NCBI RefSeq assembly: GCF_052425735.1
Contig: NC_135769.1
Span: forward strand, 5,394,001 to 5,458,000
Length of the DNA: 64,000 bases
Direction of reading: 5' to 3'
Source of the DNA: Oculina patagonica
Lineage: Eukaryota
Shown here piece by piece: positions 48,501 through 59,629 of this stretch (position 1 is its first letter; each line of letters begins with the position of its first letter). The notes below the pieces were generated by a model. It was not told the origin of the DNA, ran no database searches, and worked only from the letters and a program-made list of their open reading frames with translations. The position numbers were made by a program, and so were the translations under genes.

Positions 48501-51500
48501 ATTCTACAGAAATTCCTGAAATGTTTTCTCTGAGCTCTGTGGCTTATCTGGTAGATTTTAGCTCCAAAATGTGCATGGAGTGCTTTAAACACCCAATTAT
48601 TTGATTCTGTAGGAAAACTCATTGAGAAAAACTCTTAATTAACAATTATCTGCATGCAAAAGCATTAGAAACTTAAAGAAGAGGTGAAGCACAGTAATTG
48701 TAGTGTGACACTGTTGCTCTATTTGTATAAAATTGCTTTGTCAAATATCTGCAGTTGTTAAGCTGTTGACAAGAAACCCATGAACTCTTGAAATTTTTGC
48801 TCTGTTGCTGCACTGAACACAATAAGTGTTAAAGTTTACATAAGTTGGAATATTTGCTTTAGTGGATTTGGCGACTGTTCATTTAAAAACATGAGACAGA
48901 TTTTTCAAGTGCTCAGTGACTAATTAGCATTTTTTTAATTTGTAGAGCCATGTATTGTTGAACCAATTTATGATAAATTAGTAAAAAAAAATTTCACTAC
49001 AGTTGTAACATGCAATGTTCTTAGATGAATGTACACATAGATAAGAGAGCATTTTTTTCCTCTTTCCCATTTTGGAAATCAAAATTTCTCAGCAGCCAAA
49101 ACAAATTTGTACTAATTGACATCCCCTGTAATGACAATTTCTATGTATAATTCTGTCATTAATTATTGTTGTACACATTGAACTTATGTGTCCTTGTTTA
49201 ATTGTCTAAAGCTCTAATCATTCAGATCATTGAAATGCAAGCATCTCAGCTATATTCCATGTACCATCAATCAATCACAGCATTATTTTATTGGCATGGC
49301 AGCAATTACTTGCTTCCATGTACATTTTAAACAGCACATGAATTTTGAAGTCAAATTAAATCACATACAATATTGTAAATGCTGATTCAGTAAACTACAT
49401 GTACACTGTATCACTGTAGTCAAGGCCAAGGCAAAGTCTTACTTGTCTGCAATACATGGGAAGAGTGAAAATTACATAATCATGTAGTTTAGCTGGTCAT
49501 TGAAACTAATTGGTCTGTTCCACTGTGATGTTGTTTGCTGTCAAGATNNNNNNNNNNNNNNNNNNNNNNNNNNNNNNNNNNNNNNNNNNNNNNNNNNNNN
49601 NNNNNNNNNNNNNNNNNNNNNNNNNNNNNNNNNNNNNNNNNNNNNNNNNNNNNNNNNNNNNNNNNNNNNNNNNNNNNNNNNNNNNNNNNNNNNNNNNNNN
49701 NNNNNNNNNNNNNNNNNNNNNNNNNNNNNNNNNNNNNNNNNNNNNNNNNNNNNNNNNNNNNNNNNNNNNNNNNNNNNNNNNNNNNNNNNNNNNNNNNNNN
49801 NNNNNNNNNNNNNNNNNNNNNNNNNNNNNNNNNNNNNNNNNNNNNNNNNNNNNNNNNNNNNNNNNNNNNNNNNNNNNNNNNNNNNNNNNNNNNNNNNNNN
49901 NNNNNNNNNNNNNNNNNNNNNNNNNNNNNNNNNNNNNNNNNNNNNNNNNNNNNNNNNNNNNNNNNNNNNNNNNNNNNNNNNNNNNNNNNNNNNNNNNNNN
50001 NNNNNNNNNNNNNNNNNNNNNNNNNNNNNNNNNNNNNNNNNNNNNNNAAATATTCCTGCTTGTTTTTAGATCAATAATCTTCGTACCCAAGTTAAGAACA
50101 CAGAAGAGGAGAACCAGCGCTTAATCAAGGAAGGAAAGTAAGTTTTTGTGTTTGTACATGCTAAAATTCAAGCTTGGCTAGTTTCTTTTGTACACGAGAC
50201 AAAACTATTGTGTGTACGCGGGCTTTTAACTAGTCGAGGGTATCGAAACGAAATGATGTGCCCTTATTGTGTATTTAAAGTTAAATGTAGCTTCATAACC
50301 TTAAATGTTACAATAGAACTTTAAAAACATACCTTAAGAAAGAATGAGACTTTGTAAAAGTCCTTTGTATTTTCCCGTACTGAGCATTCGTTTCTTGCAA
50401 ACGTTCTCCTCAAGTTGTCACGTGACTTTCCGTGGCGGGAATTTGGCTTGCACCGCCTGCGCAGGCAGATTTTGTGGGGTAGCCCTCGGGGTAGTATGTA
50501 CGATGTGGAAGAAATACAATTTCTTGTAATTTAAATGCAATTTGTTTTTCTTCAGGAAAATGGCTCCACAAAGAACAGTGGTAAGTCGTGTTATTACAGT
50601 ACATTTATTTGTTGATTTTGTTATTCTGATTTCTTTCCAGTATTGATCATATAAGAAGATTCATTGTTCCAGCCATAGCTAAATTTGTTGTTAATTTTCT
50701 TTTTTTCTTCTTTCATAAACAGAAGAAGACCCTTCCACCAAAGGTGAATTAAATAACATAATCATTAATGTACAAGGCTACGGTTAGCTAAGTACATGTA
50801 TATGGAAACTTAGTATATAAACGAGAAGGGACCTGGGAACTAGATGCCACCTGTGATAACCTGAAGTGTTCTGTTGAAGGGAACTTAAAAAAATCGAAAG
50901 GAGTTTCTTACATTTAGAAAAATTAGGGACTTGTTTTCTAAAAATTGTGTGGGATGTACTTTTGCTTTAATTTCAACGGATTGGACTTTGGTTGGGGTGT
51001 AGAATAAAAATTCCCAAAAGTGTTAATACCAACAAACCCTTTTGTTGACGGCTTTCACTTTTGTCTATCTCGTCCAACAGAAAGGAAACTTTGTAAACGT
51101 TGTGCGTAAAGCCCAGGCCGCCGCATGGGAGGAGAAATTCATGGCAATGAAGGCAAAGCAGAAAGAATCTAACAAGGTCAGTTTAATAACAAGTTGTTTA
51201 ATACACTCAACTCATGGAAACGAGTACCATTTTCGGTTGCCTTCGGCATTTTCGCTGAGCGCGCGGTGATCGTCAGAGGTTGCTAGGGCTAGGCAACGAA
51301 CCTCGTGCTGTTTACTGATTGGTCTATAGGAATCGTGAACTCTTCGGTTTCATTCACGAGGGTTTGCCCAAAATGGTACTTGTTTGCAGTCCACCCGTAT
51401 TGTAAATGGGTGTTCTGATACTTGCAGGGAGTTCAGAATTCATTCGGGGTTTTCCATGTGAATGAATGCTTGGAAACTTTGCGCGTTTTGTAATTAAGTT

Positions 51501-52402
51501 CGATCCAATATCAGGGGCAAGTGTAATACCATTTGGGTTTCGCGGTTAGGTCCAATTGCTTTTATCATTGCAGAAAAGAACATTCAATGTGTTTCTCTAA
51601 CGAAACAAAACCCGAATCAAAACACTTTAGACAAATGATGTAATTTGTTGAAAGCAAGTAGTCGATCACATCACGATATTGTTTCTAACAAGTGCTGATG
51701 TTTCACAAACCTTTTTCGCGACTTCATTTACTCGAAACTTCGGAAACACGCGATTTTAAAACCGTCCAACAACAGACTTTACGACGAAGAAGGTCCAATG
51801 TGGGAAAAGCCGTCGTGATGGAATTGTGGATCAGGAGAAAATAAAGTGATAAAAAAGGTTCGTTGAACGGGCAAAAAACCTCAGTTTTATGCAAAATATT
51901 TCGCGTTTGTAACTTTTACTATAAAATTCGTTTCCTATAAAGACAAAAGTTGAGCTCTTTGTAACTCTGGGTAACGCGTAAATGTTAACACTGTAAATTT
52001 TGTCCGTTACAGATGAGCGAAGAACTCATGAGCAAAATGAACCGAGTCAAGCGCACGGACGGCCCTCTGCTCAGCGGACTGAAGAAGGGCAAGAAGGACA
52101 AGAAGAAGGATGAAAAAGAGGCCGCCCCAGCCTGGTCAAAGACCCAGCTGAAAAAGGGAGGCAGCAAAGGATGGGAAGAAGGCAAGAAGGAAGGCGAGAA
52201 GAAACCCGATTGGTCAGGACGTGTGGCTCTTAAAAAGACCGAGAAAAAGGATGCCGGAGATCTGGGCGACAGCAAGCGACAGGACTGGCGGGATGGCCTG
52301 AAGAAAGCTCCCAAAAGCCCTGGTGTCGAGGGAGGCGAGGGTGACCCGGAGTGGAAAGGTGTGAGCCTGCGCACAACCGGCCGTCACGACGAAGATGATT
52401 AA
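42503..52402 (+). CDS. Troponin-I-like, Lys-rich putative actin-binding protein (partial; middle exons probably in the N gap)
   Basis: Phase-consistent exons: 42503-42530 (MSSYSETSS), 42977-43041 (EERRRRRRERAEQENSAEPEEM), possible 15-nt micro-exon 44274-44288, [gap 49548-50047], 50070-50137 (INNLRTQVKNTEEENQRLIKEGK), 50556-50580 (KMAPQRTV), 50723-50743 (KKTLPPK), 51081-51176 (KGNFVNVVRKAQAAAWEEKFMAMKAKQKESNK), 52013-52402 (terminal exon with EKKPDWS and QDWRDGLKK). AATAAA at about 53250. The gene structure is well supported; the product call rests on remembered motif similarity. Confidence 0.7.
44702..45061. mobile_element. MITE with a nested 'TTCCAGAAAATATCCATAC' MITE (44836-45012)
   Basis: ATAGAC..GTATTTTGGTATTAGACTGGAACTAGTTTG / CAAGCTAGTTCCAATCCAATACCCAGAATAC..GTCTAT. 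Confidence 0.7.
45600..48000 (-). pseudogene. CpG-decayed coding-like relic (dead gene or transposon ORF) antisense within an intron
   Basis: Minus-strand segments read as protein interrupted by stops, many of them TGA in Arg/Gln-rich context, e.g. 46032-45791 GFPKKQNVTMKKSTVK*KKTNSQVLHEAF*QKESLCLRMEE..IQRRQEEKYMTRLNTKNL*Q with AG/GT flanks, and MAREQRNL*DSLLEQIAPAKQIYAN*PRRAPL* near 47900. The region is strongly CpG-depleted. Confidence 0.35.
49548..50047. other. Assembly gap (500 N) inside the troponin-I-like gene
   Basis: Run of N. Confidence 1.
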
Positions 52403-53249
52403 ACGCAAACTTGTTTAGGATTAGGTAGTCTTGCTACGAAAACAGGTTTTCTTAAAGCATTTTAAAAGCCAATTTTTTCGGCTCTTTTTGTATGAATTTT
52501 TTTCTATTATTAAGCCCGTTTAAGCCTTGTAGTTAAACCGAACCCGTAGAAAGTGGCTCAAATGAGCGCAAAAAGGAAGTAAAAGGTGTTTTTTTGGGTA
52601 GCTCCCACCCTCTTACCTCCATAACTCTGTACGAAACTAGAATTCTTCTTAAAATGCCACAATGACAAAAAGCACGTGGAATTAGTTAAACCCTTTTAGC
52701 CATGTGGCTACCATACAAATTCTCCTAACTTTTCTCCATACAAAATATACAGCACTGGTAAGAAGAATTTGTTTTAGTGCTGATCGAAAGCGAGATTCTC
52801 GTATCTACTTTGTGTAATACTGGGTGAAATAGTGAGGAGAATTTATGTGTGGATCACTTTCGCGGCTTGAAGGGTTAACAGTCGGTACGATATGTAGTTT
52901 ATGGAGTTAAAAGGGTCTTGAATCATTCCTTCAGTTCACTTATAATGCATCACGAACTCATTGCGTTGCCGTGGCTCGATCGATGAGTGCAGTTATAAGA
53001 GAGCTGGAGGAAAACCGGAAGTAAGTATGGATAAAACAAATGACGGTTGGAACGGATGCTCAAAGTCAAAAAGTTGTTTTTTAAAGTTGTGTAAGTCATT
53101 GTAGTTCTTGTGTAATTTTCTTAGTTTTGCATTTTTATATTGTCTTAAGCGTCATGAGAGTTTTTTAAAGTGAAATATATCCTGTAATCGGGCTGCATTA
53201 AATGTCAGAATCATATCGTTTGTATTTTTGTTTATTTTTTCTATAATTC

Positions 53250-53255
53250 AATAAA
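53250..53255 (+). terminator. Polyadenylation signal for the 52013-52402 terminal exon
   Basis: AATAAA about 850 nt after the stop, followed by GT/T-rich downstream sequence. Confidence 0.55.
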
Positions 53256-53524
53256 GTTCGTTTTGTAGCAAGTCACTGTTGATTGTTTTTGTTGCGTGGT
53301 AGTGTTCAGTCGTGTGTGATTTGTCACGCTTTCGCCATTAGAGTGATTTTATTTAACCCGTGGAACAACATCTAACAATTAGTGCTAAATAGTGACAACT
53401 AAACAAAAGAAAACAATGGAATAAGCGTCTAATAGTATCTATTTGAGTAGTAACTATTTCACGGTTGAAGTAAAATCACTCTAAGGCTTCACATGCAGTG
53501 AAGATTAGCAGTTCGGGATATTCC

Positions 53525-54513
53525 TAGCCTGAGTATCAGGCTTTTCTAAGGGGTAGGGGGAAAAGGAAGGAGCGCGGACGGAAAGAAAAGCCTGACACAG
53601 ACGCTTTAATTCCAGTTTTCCATCCCTCACGGCGTGATAAGCGTCAACCAATCAAATTCATTTCCGGTTGTCACTTGCGAAGCCGGACCAAGATATAACT
53701 GATAAGACACAATACATCTTGCAACAATATTTATAATGCCGATCCCGGCATCAATAAAATGCAAGTAATCAACGTTTTCACGGAACATATATCTTGTCCT
53801 TACACGGCGAAAATTTCGAGAGTTTAAAGCATATCTTACAAATAGAATTGAGCAAAAACAAACTAGCAAAACATGTGGCAAAGAAGTGTGAAACAAACAG
53901 GAAACCACGCAGCGCAGACTATTATGCAATGACCTCTAGACATTTCCTTGGCCACAATCTTACGGCTCTATTTAATACATAATGCCTCTAAATAAAACAG
54001 TGCCCCTCAGAAAGAAATGAGAAGCAAATTACATCGAAAAACCGAATTTAACACAGAACGGCAAGGGTACAAATGTCACAAACGCAAGCCCGTCACCTTT
54101 ATTTTGCTAAAACTTCCAGGACGTCGACTTTCCGTTTCACAAGCAGCTTTCGAGGCATAATTTCTGTCCTCTATTACGTCTAATTCTAGGAAAAACTGTA
54201 GAGCGCCTTCACGAGCCGTTTAGAAGTCGTGGCCTTCCATAAATACACTGAAATAACGCTGAATAACGTCGAGCGAAGTTTTCGTTCACTGTTCGTTCGC
54301 GTGGACATCAGTTCATAGAAGACGCCGTTATGAAATTTTTATTTCCGGCCGGTGGTGTGACGTCAGGGCCCATTGTGAATTACCCAATCAGCGCCACATC
54401 CAGAATCTGGATGTTCGACATGATCCAATCAAAGCGTTTGTGTCAGGCCTTCCTCTCCTCTTTCCTTCCCTACCCTTCCCCCCTCCCCTTAGGAAGGCCT
54501 GATACTCAGGTTA
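53525..54513. mobile_element. About 1 kb non-autonomous DNA transposon with a 9-bp TSD (Mutator-like)
   Basis: TIR TAGCCTGAGTATCAGGC / GCCTGATACTCAGGTTA; perfect TSD GGATATTCC at 53516-53524 and 54514-54522. Confidence 0.85.
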
Positions 54514-55381
54514 GGATATTCCTATATTTAAGGACAGGCATGACGTCACGGACCTATTGTTATCGGGGAAAATGGCGGACGAATGCACCTCACTATTATT
54601 CAATCGATTGTTTCCAGGCTTTCTCAGCTTCCATTCGGGACTTTTAATGTAAGGAGTGCTTAAAAATGTAGAGATATCCCGAACTGATTACTGGACGCTT
54701 CTAGCAGACAAGTGACAAACTTTCGCGCCAAATTAGCAGTAAGGGAAAGCCTGGGTCCAGGTGACTGTTAAACAGTAGATTGTTTTCCTCGAGATACCAT
54801 CGCGCAAGTTAGCCGGAGGCGCAAATAATCGCAGGAACTTCGCGGTGCGGTCACGCTCGACCCTCGTTCCAAACGTAATTAATAATGTTTTCCCTATGCT
54901 TGATTTCCAGCCGTTTCCCAGCCCCTCCTTCCCCCTGAGATTTGAAAATCTAGTTCAGGTTCTCTTAGATTCAATTTCTGCATTCTGGGAGTATTTGTGA
55001 CGAAAAAGATATTGGCCTGCTGCACCAGTCCCCCTTGGCCATCAAATAAACGGCACGCAATGTATGCAGAAGCGATGACCGTGGTTCCGCAAGGGGTCTT
55101 GTATAATTTGTCTCTTTCGTCTACTTTGTATTAGGCTTTTCTAACTGCCCGGGAGTATTTTGCATTTATGAGTTATTCTTGCACTTAGTTCCCAATCCCA
55201 TTCGGTTCTATCGATCGTTCGATCCGCCGCGCATGCAACAGAACCGGTCGACCGCCTCATGGCATAAAGCGATGCCGTCATGACGTCATCGCTTTAAATG
55301 ACAAAAATTCCCTTCACCTCTCCTCATAGGATTAATCAGTAGCTTTCTTACGATCGATATTCCGTCTCGATCTGTTTGTAG

Positions 55382-57856
55382 GGTCCTGAGTGGGCTCGCA
55401 CTGCCAAGAAACATAAACCAATAAGTTCGATCCTCGGCAGACCGAAAGAGCATTCCGAAGCAAAACCGAAGACTAAACCGAAGCCCGATTGGAAGTCGAC
55501 CTCTCTACGAAAGAAAGACCCGCCTAAACCCGCAATGACACAATCGGACTATTGGAAAGAGGCGAGGCCAGACTGGGCCAAGGGAAAGAGTCCTATCGAG
55601 AAACCCAAAGTACCAGACAAGCCAATTGCAAAAGGAAAGGCAAAGGATTACTGGGAAGAGGCGCGGCCAGACTGGAGCAAAGGAAAAAGCCCTGTGGCGA
55701 AGCCAAGTACTGGAGATCTAAAGAAGGTTGAAGAAAAGAAGAAGTATGATTATCCAACGCCAGATTGGGCAACTCGTGTGCGTAGCAAAGATAAGGTGAG
55801 ATTACCTGACAAAAACAACAATAACAACAACAACAAAACGTTTACTGTGATCGTCCGGGGTCAGGGTAGTGTTGTTAGTGACTGACGTTTCGGCGACTTG
55901 ACCGCGGTCGGAAGCACGCACGTTCAGCCTAATTTTCACCTTCAGCTAATCTCAAACCCTTATCTTACTCTGTCTGGCGCAAAAAAGTGAAAGGTGAAGT
56001 GCCTCCCTTCCGCTTGGCCGTGGGAGATCTGAGTTCTAGCTATATAGATTACCGCTCACCATCAATAGACCTCAATAGTCCTTTTCAGAACTACCCTCAT
56101 TCGCGGACGATTACACTTCATACGAACTTATCTTTTGGGTTTAAAATCTAGTTCAAACAGACGAAACAAAACAGCGTTAACAACAGCAAAAACAAAAATA
56201 ATCAATAAAGGAACTGTAACAGTGAAAGCATTGTTTCCTTCGTAATAGAAAGGCTGTCTGGTATGATAAAATCCCTAACTTAGCTGGCGTGTTAGATAAT
56301 TCAAAGAATCTATTATCAATAACAAAAAATAATTCAATTTAAGAAGTTGGCTGTATGATTGCATCCCTATTTCGTTCCAAGCGCCTCAGATCCTCTGACA
56401 ACCCTCTACCTTAAAGCCTTAAAGCGCACTGTTATTTTTTATTCATTGACAAAGGGAATATCCACTGCATAAAACATTCCGGTTTAAAAGCTTTTGCTGA
56501 TTTTTAACTTCTTTGTCCCCTTTTATTAAGGCCTCAGACGAACAAGACGGCAAGAAAAGTCTTTTGAAAGCCGAGTTGGAGAACATGTTTGGGAAACCCA
56601 AACCGAAAGTGGTCAGTATTAAATTGTTTTAAAATTTCATGGAGATGGAGCTCCTTACTGAGTGTCGTAAAATGCAAAGCAAAGTTATCACATTTGGCAG
56701 TGCAATCGACAGTGCAATCACAATTAGCCATGTTCTAAACGAGCAGGGGACTGGGCACGAACATATTTTCTCTTCGGTACAAACATTCAATATCAATTGA
56801 ATTGAAAAATGGGGCATGTCATCTGAAAAAGCATCCAAAAATTAGTAATTTCACCGAATTTGATTGTTATTGGTTTAAACCCAAAGGCATGGTATACTTT
56901 TAGTATGGATTGGAGGGACAGGCGTCCTCCAATCCATACTAAGCTCTCTTATTTTAAAAGTGTACCATGCCTTTGTGTTTAAACAAATAACCACCAAATT
57001 CGTTAAATTTACTAATTTTTCGATGCTCTTTCAGATTACGTGCCCCATTTTCAATTCAATCGATATTGAATATTCGTACCAAGAAAAAAATATGTTCGTA
57101 CCCAGTCCCCTGCTCGTTTAGAACATGGCCAATAAAAGTAAATGGCCCTTGAGCCGAGGATGCCTAGGGACTAGGCTGTTGTTCAGCTTTTTTAATTTTT
57201 TTAAGTCCTTATCAGATCCAACGTTAAAACAAATGTATGACTATCATTAGGGAACATAGTAATTCAAAGTAATTTTTGCAATGTTTTATTTCCCTTTTTG
57301 CCCAACAAACAGAAAAGACGCCATTCCTCTGAAGACATGGCGGAAAGTTATCGCGCGAACATACGGTGAGTGAAATCAAGTTCCTTGAATGCGCCTTTTA
57401 GTTTAGGAAAAGCACGTATGGTAAAGGTTACTCACCTTAGATCAAAGGTGTGTTGAGCCTAAAACCTGCGTTGGAGCCTATATCCGGTTTCCGTAATATG
57501 AAGTGACTTGGAGTATTTCTTCTCCCCTGCATGTAATCATCGTTCATCGTTCAAGGAAGTCGTTTTCTCCTTATGTAGCTTTACTCATCTATAAGATGCG
57601 ATAACTAAGCAAAATACAGAGAAACAAATGTGCTTGCTGAGTTTCTCTGCCGTCGAGACCCGTACAAAAGCGGATAGAAGGGAATTTGTATTGCCAGTGC
57701 TTTCTTTGCTAACGTACTTCAATAATAAATTTTAAATCCTCCGACAGAAAATTTGCCGACCACCGTCTAAGTGTCAGAATGAAAACGAAACATCGACCTT
57801 CATCCAATCCCGTCAGGCAGCTGTTGTCACGTGATGATATCAGGAGTGAGCTGTGA
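55382..57856 (+). CDS. Lys/Pro-rich PDW-repeat exon block ending in a supervillin-like motif; probable alternative 3' end of the upstream gene, or a separate gene
   Basis: Exons 55382-55795 (GPEWARTAKK..KPDWKS..DYWKEARPDWAKGKSP..DYWEEARPDWSKGKSP..PDWATRVRSKDK), 56531-56611 (ASDEQDGKKSLLKAELENMFGKPKPKV), 57313-57365 (KRRHSSEDMAESYRANIR), 57748-57856 (KFADHRLSVRMKTKHRPSSNPVRQLLSRDDIRSEL*). All are GT-AG, with phases 0,0,2 consistent. Confidence 0.75.
56726..57130. mobile_element. About 400-bp foldback/palindromic MITE in an intron
   Basis: GCCATGTTCTAAACGAGCAGGGGACTGGG ... CCCAGTCCCCTGCTCGTTTAGAACATGGC; the arms are complementary nearly to the centre (TTAGTATGGATTGGAGG/CCTCCAATCCATACTAA). Confidence 0.85.
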
Positions 57857-58044
57857 GCTACCAACAGGAAACACAAGGCACAATTAACAAACCTAACAAC
57901 ATAACTAGCAAAGCAGCGCAATCAAATTCAGTGCAAGAGAAGATGACTTTATCCTCTTTCAGTAAAAGTAAGCGTGCACCATAACTTGTTTGTGCACGAT
58001 AAAGCATGAAACAGTTGTTAATTGGTTTGAATCAAACAAACATT

Positions 58045-59561
58045 CATCCTCGGAGACCCAGGGGCAGTTAGTGGGGCGAGGAAAACGCGAAAATGCGGGT
58101 AGAAAATAGCGCGAAACTGCGAGGGAAAAAATCAACATATAAAAGTTGTATTGACTGAAAGTGCCCCTGGGGAAAGAGTCTTACCAGACCAGTTCAAAAA
58201 GCTCTCTGAATACTGCCTCCTGATTGGGCAGAAAAATCTTTTGTATTCCCTTTGTATTATTCTGCCCAATCGGCGACCAGCCTGACTACAGTCCTTTTGG
58301 TGTGTTCTCACACGAAATATGTACACAAAGCCAGTTCGTTCGCCATATCTGTCTTGCTTGTTCGCCAAGAATTTGCTCGGGAAGGAAAAGTTTCGGCTAG
58401 TGCCTCCCCTGGTTGAAAACGTCGAAAGTTTGACGGCCATGCACGCGGAGAAACGGCGGATTCTTCAGATTGTGGTTGATCGCAGGTATCGTAACACTTG
58501 CATGCTGTTTGCGAGTTTTAAAAGTTTGTGTGCGATATGCTAGTTGCACTGCTGTAATGGATGCATGTTTTCAGATTTTTTTCTGGGAAGATCAATGACA
58601 GCTTAACGCGAAACTTTTCCAAACAAGAGTAATTTTTTTACGAACAAGCCCGGCAGATGTGTCAAGCGGCCGTCTAGCTACGCGTGCAAAACGTGCAGCA
58701 GCGATTCCTAAGTTTTTTATAGGTGAGATAATAGAAGATCGATCGCAGCTGGAAGCGAAACTACAACAACAAAAAAAGTTTATTTAAACAATCATATTAT
58801 TTACAATATTTTTCACCTCTCACAATTAGCCTAGTTATTTGAGGCGGGAGGTGAAGAAGAAAATGAAGAAGAAAAAAAAAATAAACAAAGTTACAAAAAG
58901 GTAATACCTTATCTACATTAAAGAAAAGATAGTAATAAGAAAGATAACTTCGAATATCATAGCAATAAATTAAAATAACAATGTGTTTTAAGTTACATTA
59001 AGCTAAAGATTTTAGGAAGTCAAAACTATTTCCAAACAAACTTTCAAGACCTTGCATTTTGTAAATTTTTCCGTCGATCGACCGATTAGATACGCGCGCG
59101 TGTAATGCGTGCAGCACCAATTGTAGCACTCAAATGACGGTCATATTTCCCGAAGACAAAATGTTCCCAACACTTCACATCCAAGTTGAGGAGGCACTAG
59201 CCGAAACTTTTCCTTCCCGAGCAAATTCTTGGCGAACAAGCAAGACAGAAATGGCGAGCGAACTCGCGAACGTGGCTTTGTGTACATATTTCGTGTGAGA
59301 ACACACCAAAAGGACTGTAGTCAGGCTGGTCGCCGATTGGGCAGAATAATACAAAGGGAATACAAAAGATTTTTCTGCCCAATCAGGAGGCAGTATTCAG
59401 AGAGCTTTTTGAACTGGTCTGGTAAGACTCTTTCCCCAGGGGCACTTTCAGTCAATACAAATTTTATATGTTGATTTTTTTCCTCGCAGTTTCGCGCTAT
59501 TTTCTACCCGCATTTTCGCGTTTCCCTCGCCCCACTAACTGCCCCTGGATCTCCGAGGATG
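58045..59561. mobile_element. 1.5-kb foldback/Mutator-like element with about 360-bp TIRs
   Basis: 58045-58405 is the near-perfect reverse complement of about 59190-59561; flanks ACAAACATT / ACAAACAAT (9-bp TSD, 1 mismatch); explains the mirror-image ORFs 58132-58440(-) and 59229-59474(+). Confidence 0.9.
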
Positions 59562-59629
59562 ACAAACAATCAACATATCGGTTGATTTCGTCACCGAAGT
59601 ACGTTGCTAAGCAACATAACATATTCCTG

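Follow-up and report, generated by a model that had tools for sequence, protein, structure and literature searches.

A supervillin-type peptide encoded by a spliced terminal exon behind a troponin-I-like gene of the coral Oculina patagonica

Supervillin is a well-studied scaffold for myosin II, actin, and proteins of cytokinesis. In the mammalian protein, the myosin II and L-MLCK site has been mapped to residues 1-174 and the F-actin sites to residues 171-830, and the fragment 831-1281, with the KIF14 site and a stretch predicted to form a coiled coil, disturbs cytokinesis when overexpressed (PMC3842989). The 35 residues that precede the gelsolin repeats are unnamed, unstudied, and nearly invariant from corals to mammals; on the same map they lie at approximately 913-948, outside the F-actin and myosin II sites and inside 831-1281 (PMC3842989). 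Our literature search found no publication on this motif or on its occurrence outside supervillin. Here we analyzed a 64,000-nucleotide stretch of the stony coral Oculina patagonica (assembly GCF_052425735.1, contig NC_135769.1, positions 5,394,001 to 5,458,000 of the forward strand; hereafter the window, in whose numbering all positions are given unless another locus is named), in which a small plus-strand exon at 57748..57856 encodes a peptide of this kind and ends the reading frame. This exon would close a long isoform of a troponin-I-like gene. Its match to supervillin makes it probable that a single docking peptide serves two otherwise unrelated proteins.

A preliminary description, drawn up from the letters of the window, had proposed the exon, its peptide, and its splicing, and all three are borne out by translation and by contigs. 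Bases 57749-57856 translate into a 35-residue supervillin-type peptide with its TGA stop codon at 57854-57856, and base 57748, which lies directly behind an AG acceptor at 57746-57747, supplies the third position of an arginine codon interrupted by the intron (CG/A). Four public sequencing runs were aligned to 51990-57980, and in two of them (X1 and X2, which come from two studies) one contig each joins 55380/55526-55795, 56531-56611, 57313-57365, and 57748-57980. All skipped parts start with GT and end with AG (joints 55795/56531, 56611/57313, and 57365/57748). The chain thus comprises, all on the plus strand, a lysine-rich first exon of a second tail with repeated [PD][DE]W modules (55382..55795; contigs from 55380, an acceptor TAG/G at 55379-55382, and a conserved [GD]PEWAR start), a coding exon of 81 nt (56531..56611), a penultimate coding exon of 53 nt (57313..57365), and the terminal coding exon, whose reading frame runs unbroken from 55382-55795 through all four exons to the TGA. 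The 3′ untranslated region extends at least over 57857..57980, as covered by contig pieces of X1 and X2, and the X1 contig carries about 99 further letters beyond 57980. Translated from the methionine at 55535, the spliced frame is identical over 167 of 167 residues to the GenBank entry 'hypothetical protein ACROYT_G036869 [Oculina patagonica]' (P0194), the end of which is the peptide under study.

By sequence comparison, the peptide is homologous to the pre-gelsolin segment of supervillin. A profile built from 45 supervillin copies only (vertebrate supervillins and one invertebrate supervillin-like protein), with zero cnidarian sequences and therefore free of circularity, was compared with the 2190 six-frame open reading frames (ORFs) of the window, and its sole match was the ORF with the exon (31.6 bits, E 1.4e-8; next-best ORF 5.5 bits). 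The alignment is ungapped over positions 2-35 of 36, in agreement with the gap-free match first proposed, and the supervillin sequence that had then been quoted lies within one or two residues of the copies of mouse lemur (P0078:913-948) and rabbit (P0171:1437-1472). Searched in six frames against the whole 529-Mb coral genome, the 35-residue peptide found two other places, with E-values of 0.005 and 0.8. At each of them a small exon precedes others that match Pfam Gelsolin, and one of the loci also has a villin headpiece. With a wider profile (A3), exactly three copies of the motif were found in this genome (E about 1e-15), and the next match had an E-value above 3.

The two coral supervillin-like paralogs, at G000:C10:8549800-8579500 and G000:C11:14159900-14189600, each start with a charged N-terminal exon of great length (a single open frame, about 1330 aa), which is followed by the motif exon, a conserved 'AMAGL.S.ED' exon, and gelsolin repeats, and it is the C10 paralog that ends in the villin headpiece.

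A profile of the three coral copies, searched against 1.84 billion representative proteins, gave 48 matches at E <=0.001, and where the context is known these are of two kinds, namely supervillin-type proteins or C-terminal copies in cnidarian proteins. Two protein contexts and three copies in the genome make the term 'mobile', which the preliminary description had used for the segment, an overstatement. Among the supervillin-type matches, the 'supervillin-like' protein of Lampetra planeri (P0043, E 5.9e-5) carries the motif at 1298-1331 of 2183 residues, and an invertebrate protein of 958 aa (P0038) has the motif followed by gelsolin repeats and then the headpiece. A search with the lamprey region retrieved the motif in nearly all of the 120 supervillins listed, from hagfish to primates (about 110 fit the search pattern), and in supervillins it stands about 80 residues N-terminal of the first gelsolin repeat. 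Two of the matches from the large search, P0036 and P0042, were discarded as unrelated repeat proteins whose score is the sum of short partial matches. P0036 (387 aa) consists of nine tandem units, each with HR.SSNPLKT.DIRES and partly like the core of the motif, and is probably a translated DNA repeat.

In numbers, the window peptide is identical without gaps at 12-13 of 36 positions to the vertebrate and P0038 copies, at 11 and 16 of 36 to the coral's own two supervillin-like copies, and at 17 of 36 to that of another coral; the invariant Asn-Pro and a Leu, an Arg, and an Asp are common to the window peptide and supervillin, and in cnidarians the motif occupies one small exon. What differs is the setting. 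In the window the motif forms the C-terminus, ending in S-E-L with a stop codon directly after it, whereas the coiled-coil stretch, gelsolin repeats, and headpiece that follow in supervillin are absent, and the carrier protein is unrelated outside the motif. When the whole second tails of O. patagonica, Stylophora, Nematostella, and Actinia were compared with supervillins, each gave one significant alignment, motif to motif, and nothing else was alike. Neither gelsolin repeats (PF00626) nor a villin headpiece (PF02209) occurs in the window, and a query that matches six exons at the coral supervillin locus found no gelsolin-like exon in these 64 kb, so that the isolation of the segment stands as first described. 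It is also unnamed, as had been claimed: Pfam holds no family for the motif, whether searched with the exon, the full-length relatives, or the surrounding supervillin region, and a profile search of the PDB found no solved structure that contains it. A search for look-alikes in the ESM Atlas gave no usable match.

The motif can be approximated as [FV]-A-[DE]-[HQ]-[KR]-R-x-[VIL]-[KR]-x3-[KR]-x4-[ST]-x-N-P-[VIL]-[KR]-x-L-x2-R-x-D-[VIL]. Across 56 aligned copies, including that of the window, N21 and P22 are invariant, L26, R29, and D31 are conserved in at least 90% of the copies, and the spacing is fixed. Beyond these columns, basic residues and a proline in the first half are conserved. After the Asn-Pro, positions 1, 2, and 4 are conserved and position 3 is the most variable, a pattern that suggests a short helix. 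The conservation is concentrated at the end of the tail, as the last 36 residues of this coral are identical to those of sea anemones at 26-27 of 36 positions (72-75%) and the remaining 182 tail residues at 22-26%. Over the coral and anemone orthologs compared, 26-28 of the 36 motif positions are identical. The named carriers of tail-type copies belong to Scleractinia (Stylophora, Pocillopora, Oculina, Desmophyllum, and Porites) and Actiniaria (Nematostella and Actinia). All tail-type copies stop right after S-E-L (window, Stylophora, and Nematostella) or S-E-F (Actinia), a free C-terminus that, as a sequence pattern only, fits the class I PDZ-binding pattern [ST]-x-hydrophobic. In two Pocillopora models (P0193 and P0196), the motif breaks off after ...SREDL and about 20 different residues follow (EYERIRLV...), vaguely like the EYTEQRLN that follows the motif in vertebrate supervillin; this variant ending may be real or an artefact of the models.

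The carrier of the motif was first described as a troponin-I-like protein. This holds for Nematostella, where a 498-aa protein named 'troponin I isoform X17' by NCBI (XP_032231830.2) ends in the motif, and for one Stylophora model (PFX18709.1, P0049) with the motif at the end of a troponin-I-like protein, but in the window itself the connection is one that we infer. Here the abundant terminal exon of the troponin-I-like gene (52011-52943, 'tail 1') contains an internal donor, GGT/GTGAGC, after position 52360, 13 codons before its stop codon. If this donor were joined to 55382 on the plus strand, the part of tail 1 at 52011..52360 would be retained, the frame would be kept, and the protein would read ...DPEWKG/GPEWAR..., in parallel to the corresponding Stylophora junction ...DPEWKG/DPEWAR.... 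The second tail would therefore extend most of the first tail and not replace it. Both tails (52013-52360 and 55382-55795) contain the same repeat type, in which a few residues and then a basic pair come after [PD]-[DE]-W, and the long isoform would hold about eight [PD]-[DE]-W units in a row.

The explanation that we favor as a whole, and hold to be on balance probable, combines a flexible linear docking motif, a captured supervillin exon, a rare long isoform, and action in trans. Before the lineages of stony corals and sea anemones parted, the troponin-I-like gene would have acquired a copy of a supervillin exon as its new last exon at the 3′ end, and no other part of the tail would have been conserved as strongly since. 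In each of the three coral genes the module has the size of an exon, which fits such a copying event; in the coral supervillin paralogs, the motif exon ends four to five codons later than that of the window, at a phase-0 donor. The rare long isoform would arise when the donor at 52360 inside the abundant terminal exon is used and four further exons are added. The exon would encode a flexible linear docking motif made up of a basic stretch, the invariant Asn-Pro, and a short helix. In two AlphaFold2 models of primate supervillin (one from the motif to the third repeat and one from the motif to the C-terminus), the motif has a pLDDT of 42-58 and the gelsolin domains 80-90, with short helices predicted on either side of the Asn-Pro; this predicted flexibility points to a linear motif and not to a part of the folded core. 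The peptide would most likely act in trans, whereby the troponin-I-like protein could gain the binding partner or the targeting of supervillin.

Several observations weigh against this explanation. The 5′ intron positions of the motif exon are not the same in the three coral genes, so that the story of exon capture is not clean. That X1 and X2 are RNA is only a guess, although it is difficult to find another explanation for their intron-free GT..AG joints. The transcript carrying 57748-57856 is rare: contig depth on the four second-tail exons is 13-25 versus about 4000 on exon 52011-52943, approximately 200-fold lower, and a run of poly(A) raw reads had zero reads on the second-tail exons. No read of the aligned runs joins the troponin-I-like exons to 55382 in the window, and five coral annotations give a stand-alone or partial gene.

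The strongest of the alternatives is that exons 55382-57856 form a separate small gene (about 167 aa from the methionine at 55535) and not a second tail. The GenBank model P0194 is exactly this protein, the RefSeq model of Stylophora (XP_022801457.1) and those of Pocillopora, Desmophyllum, and Porites are likewise stand-alone or partial, the contig stops at 55380, and its depth is far below that of tail 1. Yet an open stretch of 51 codons without any ATG, conserved in other corals, leads from 55382 to the first methionine, and the stand-alone coral models, whose starts are unrelated and invented, all take up at the conserved [GD]PEWAR boundary. The in-frame donor at 52360 and the fused models of Stylophora and Nematostella also speak for a second tail, and a separate gene appears improbable.

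A troponin I homology of the peptide itself would be a different matter. The window exon is basic, like the inhibitory/switch region of troponin I, the gene that ends in it bears the NCBI name troponin I in Nematostella, and the window copy shares KF....L.VRM with vertebrate fast troponin I. This candidate was rejected: no troponin chain was found in the PDB profile search at E <=10, and the register needed to align supervillin with troponin I is not that of the tail. The VRM of the window copy, moreover, is not conserved in other corals. In Pfam, the Troponin family (PF00992) matched neither the exons (E <=10) nor the full-length proteins of Nematostella (P0029) and Stylophora (P0049) (E <=0.01).

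Nuclear import is another candidate for the main role of the motif, whose basic half would then bind importin, with the tail sending the long isoform to the nucleus. In work by Wulfkuhle et al. in 1999, the supervillin fragment 831-1281, within which the motif lies, reportedly holds the dominant nuclear targeting signal. The primate supervillin examined has only three clusters like a nuclear localization signal (NLS) by PSORT-type rules, among which RPKRR in the motif is the only one within 831-1281, and four of the four tail-type sequences (window, Stylophora, Nematostella, and Actinia) fit the bipartite rule RK-x10-(3 of 5 basic). This rule gives many false positives, however, and most non-mammalian supervillin copies, including those of the lamprey, of the invertebrate P0038, and of one of the coral paralogs, fit no NLS rule. 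The most conserved columns, Asn-Pro, Leu, Arg, and Asp, furthermore belong to the non-basic half, which an NLS does not need, and we consider nuclear import as the main function unlikely.

Direct binding to actin filaments or myosin II, as in the cytoskeletal interaction module that the preliminary description had proposed, is suggested by the actomyosin-related nature of both carrier proteins and by the combination of a basic stretch and a short helix that is typical of actin-binding peptides. The mapped sites of supervillin argue otherwise, with F-actin at 171-830 and myosin at 1-174 and the motif at approximately 913-948 (PMC3842989), and supervillin's own actin-filament motif (SFM) is a different site, at 594-602 (PMC13364712), which leaves this reading decidedly unlikely. 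Like our peptide, the SFM is short, helical, and placed where the protein is disordered, and supervillin is among its carriers. We rejected the peptide as an SFM, as its V-R-Q-L-L-S-R-D-D has Asp at P8, where the consensus VxxLxxxFE has V/L/I at P1, L at P4, F/Y at P8, and E at P9 (PMC13364712).

The constant position of the motif before the first gelsolin repeat in supervillins could also reflect a latch onto the protein's own gelsolin core, in which case the coral tail would bind supervillin in trans. The low pLDDT of the motif beside a confident core in both AlphaFold2 models, weak as negative evidence, speaks against a latch, and we hold it to be very unlikely. Among known structures, the best match of the motif profile in the PDB was the C-terminal tail peptide of murine leukaemia virus integrase (7jq8 and 2m9u), which is weak (E 0.1). 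This tail, which binds the BET ET domain, has RVQ.S.NPLK....RE in common with mammalian supervillin, but it binds as a strand with alternating hydrophobic residues, whereas the conservation of the motif fits a helix. A cellular BET ET-domain ligand imitated by gammaretroviral integrase tails may accordingly be kept as a remote lead; the ET domain of the coral, like its actin, is split over exons. Finally, that the resemblance is due to chance between basic low-complexity peptides, or that the exon is noncoding, might be thought from a short, basic peptide with no Pfam family, but it is close to inconceivable in view of the E-value of 1.4e-8 with an independent profile, the two best genome-wide matches at the equivalent place in two supervillin paralogs, the 72-75% identity between corals and anemones, and the in-frame splicing.

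Other features were noted around the exon. About 190 nt past the stop codon starts a near-perfect inverted repeat (58044-58407 and 59190-59562), with arms of about 365 nt that are 96-99% complementary and about 780 nt apart; the contig of the 3′ untranslated region reaches its first arm, and Rfam holds no family for it. Between the two tails, at 53385-54493, many contigs of all three contig runs skip approximately 880-940 bases between about 53545-53593 and about 54476-54493, with no GT..AG ends and with other letters between the two sides, which looks like an intron repeat or an insertion polymorphism and not like splicing. The window contains 663 N, with a run of N at about 49547-50050.

For cnidarian muscle-type proteins, our results refine a gene model, in that the troponin-I-like gene would give rise to a rare long isoform through a donor inside its main terminal exon. 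They also present what may be a case of exon-sized module transfer between cytoskeletal genes. A peptide found by itself at the free C-terminus of a muscle-type protein that is unrelated to supervillin, and conserved since the split of corals and anemones, argues for an autonomous binding or targeting signal. A bolder proposal, possible but doubtful in our judgment, is that of an ancient portable docking peptide with one specific partner common to supervillin and the cnidarian troponin-I-like protein. If this is true, the long isoform would bring a thin-filament-regulator-like protein to the partner of supervillin or to its place, at the cell cortex, the central spindle, or the nucleus. The 36-mer offers a minimal reagent for the search of this partner, and a partner found with it would at the same time account for a part of human supervillin that is invariant and so far uncharacterised.

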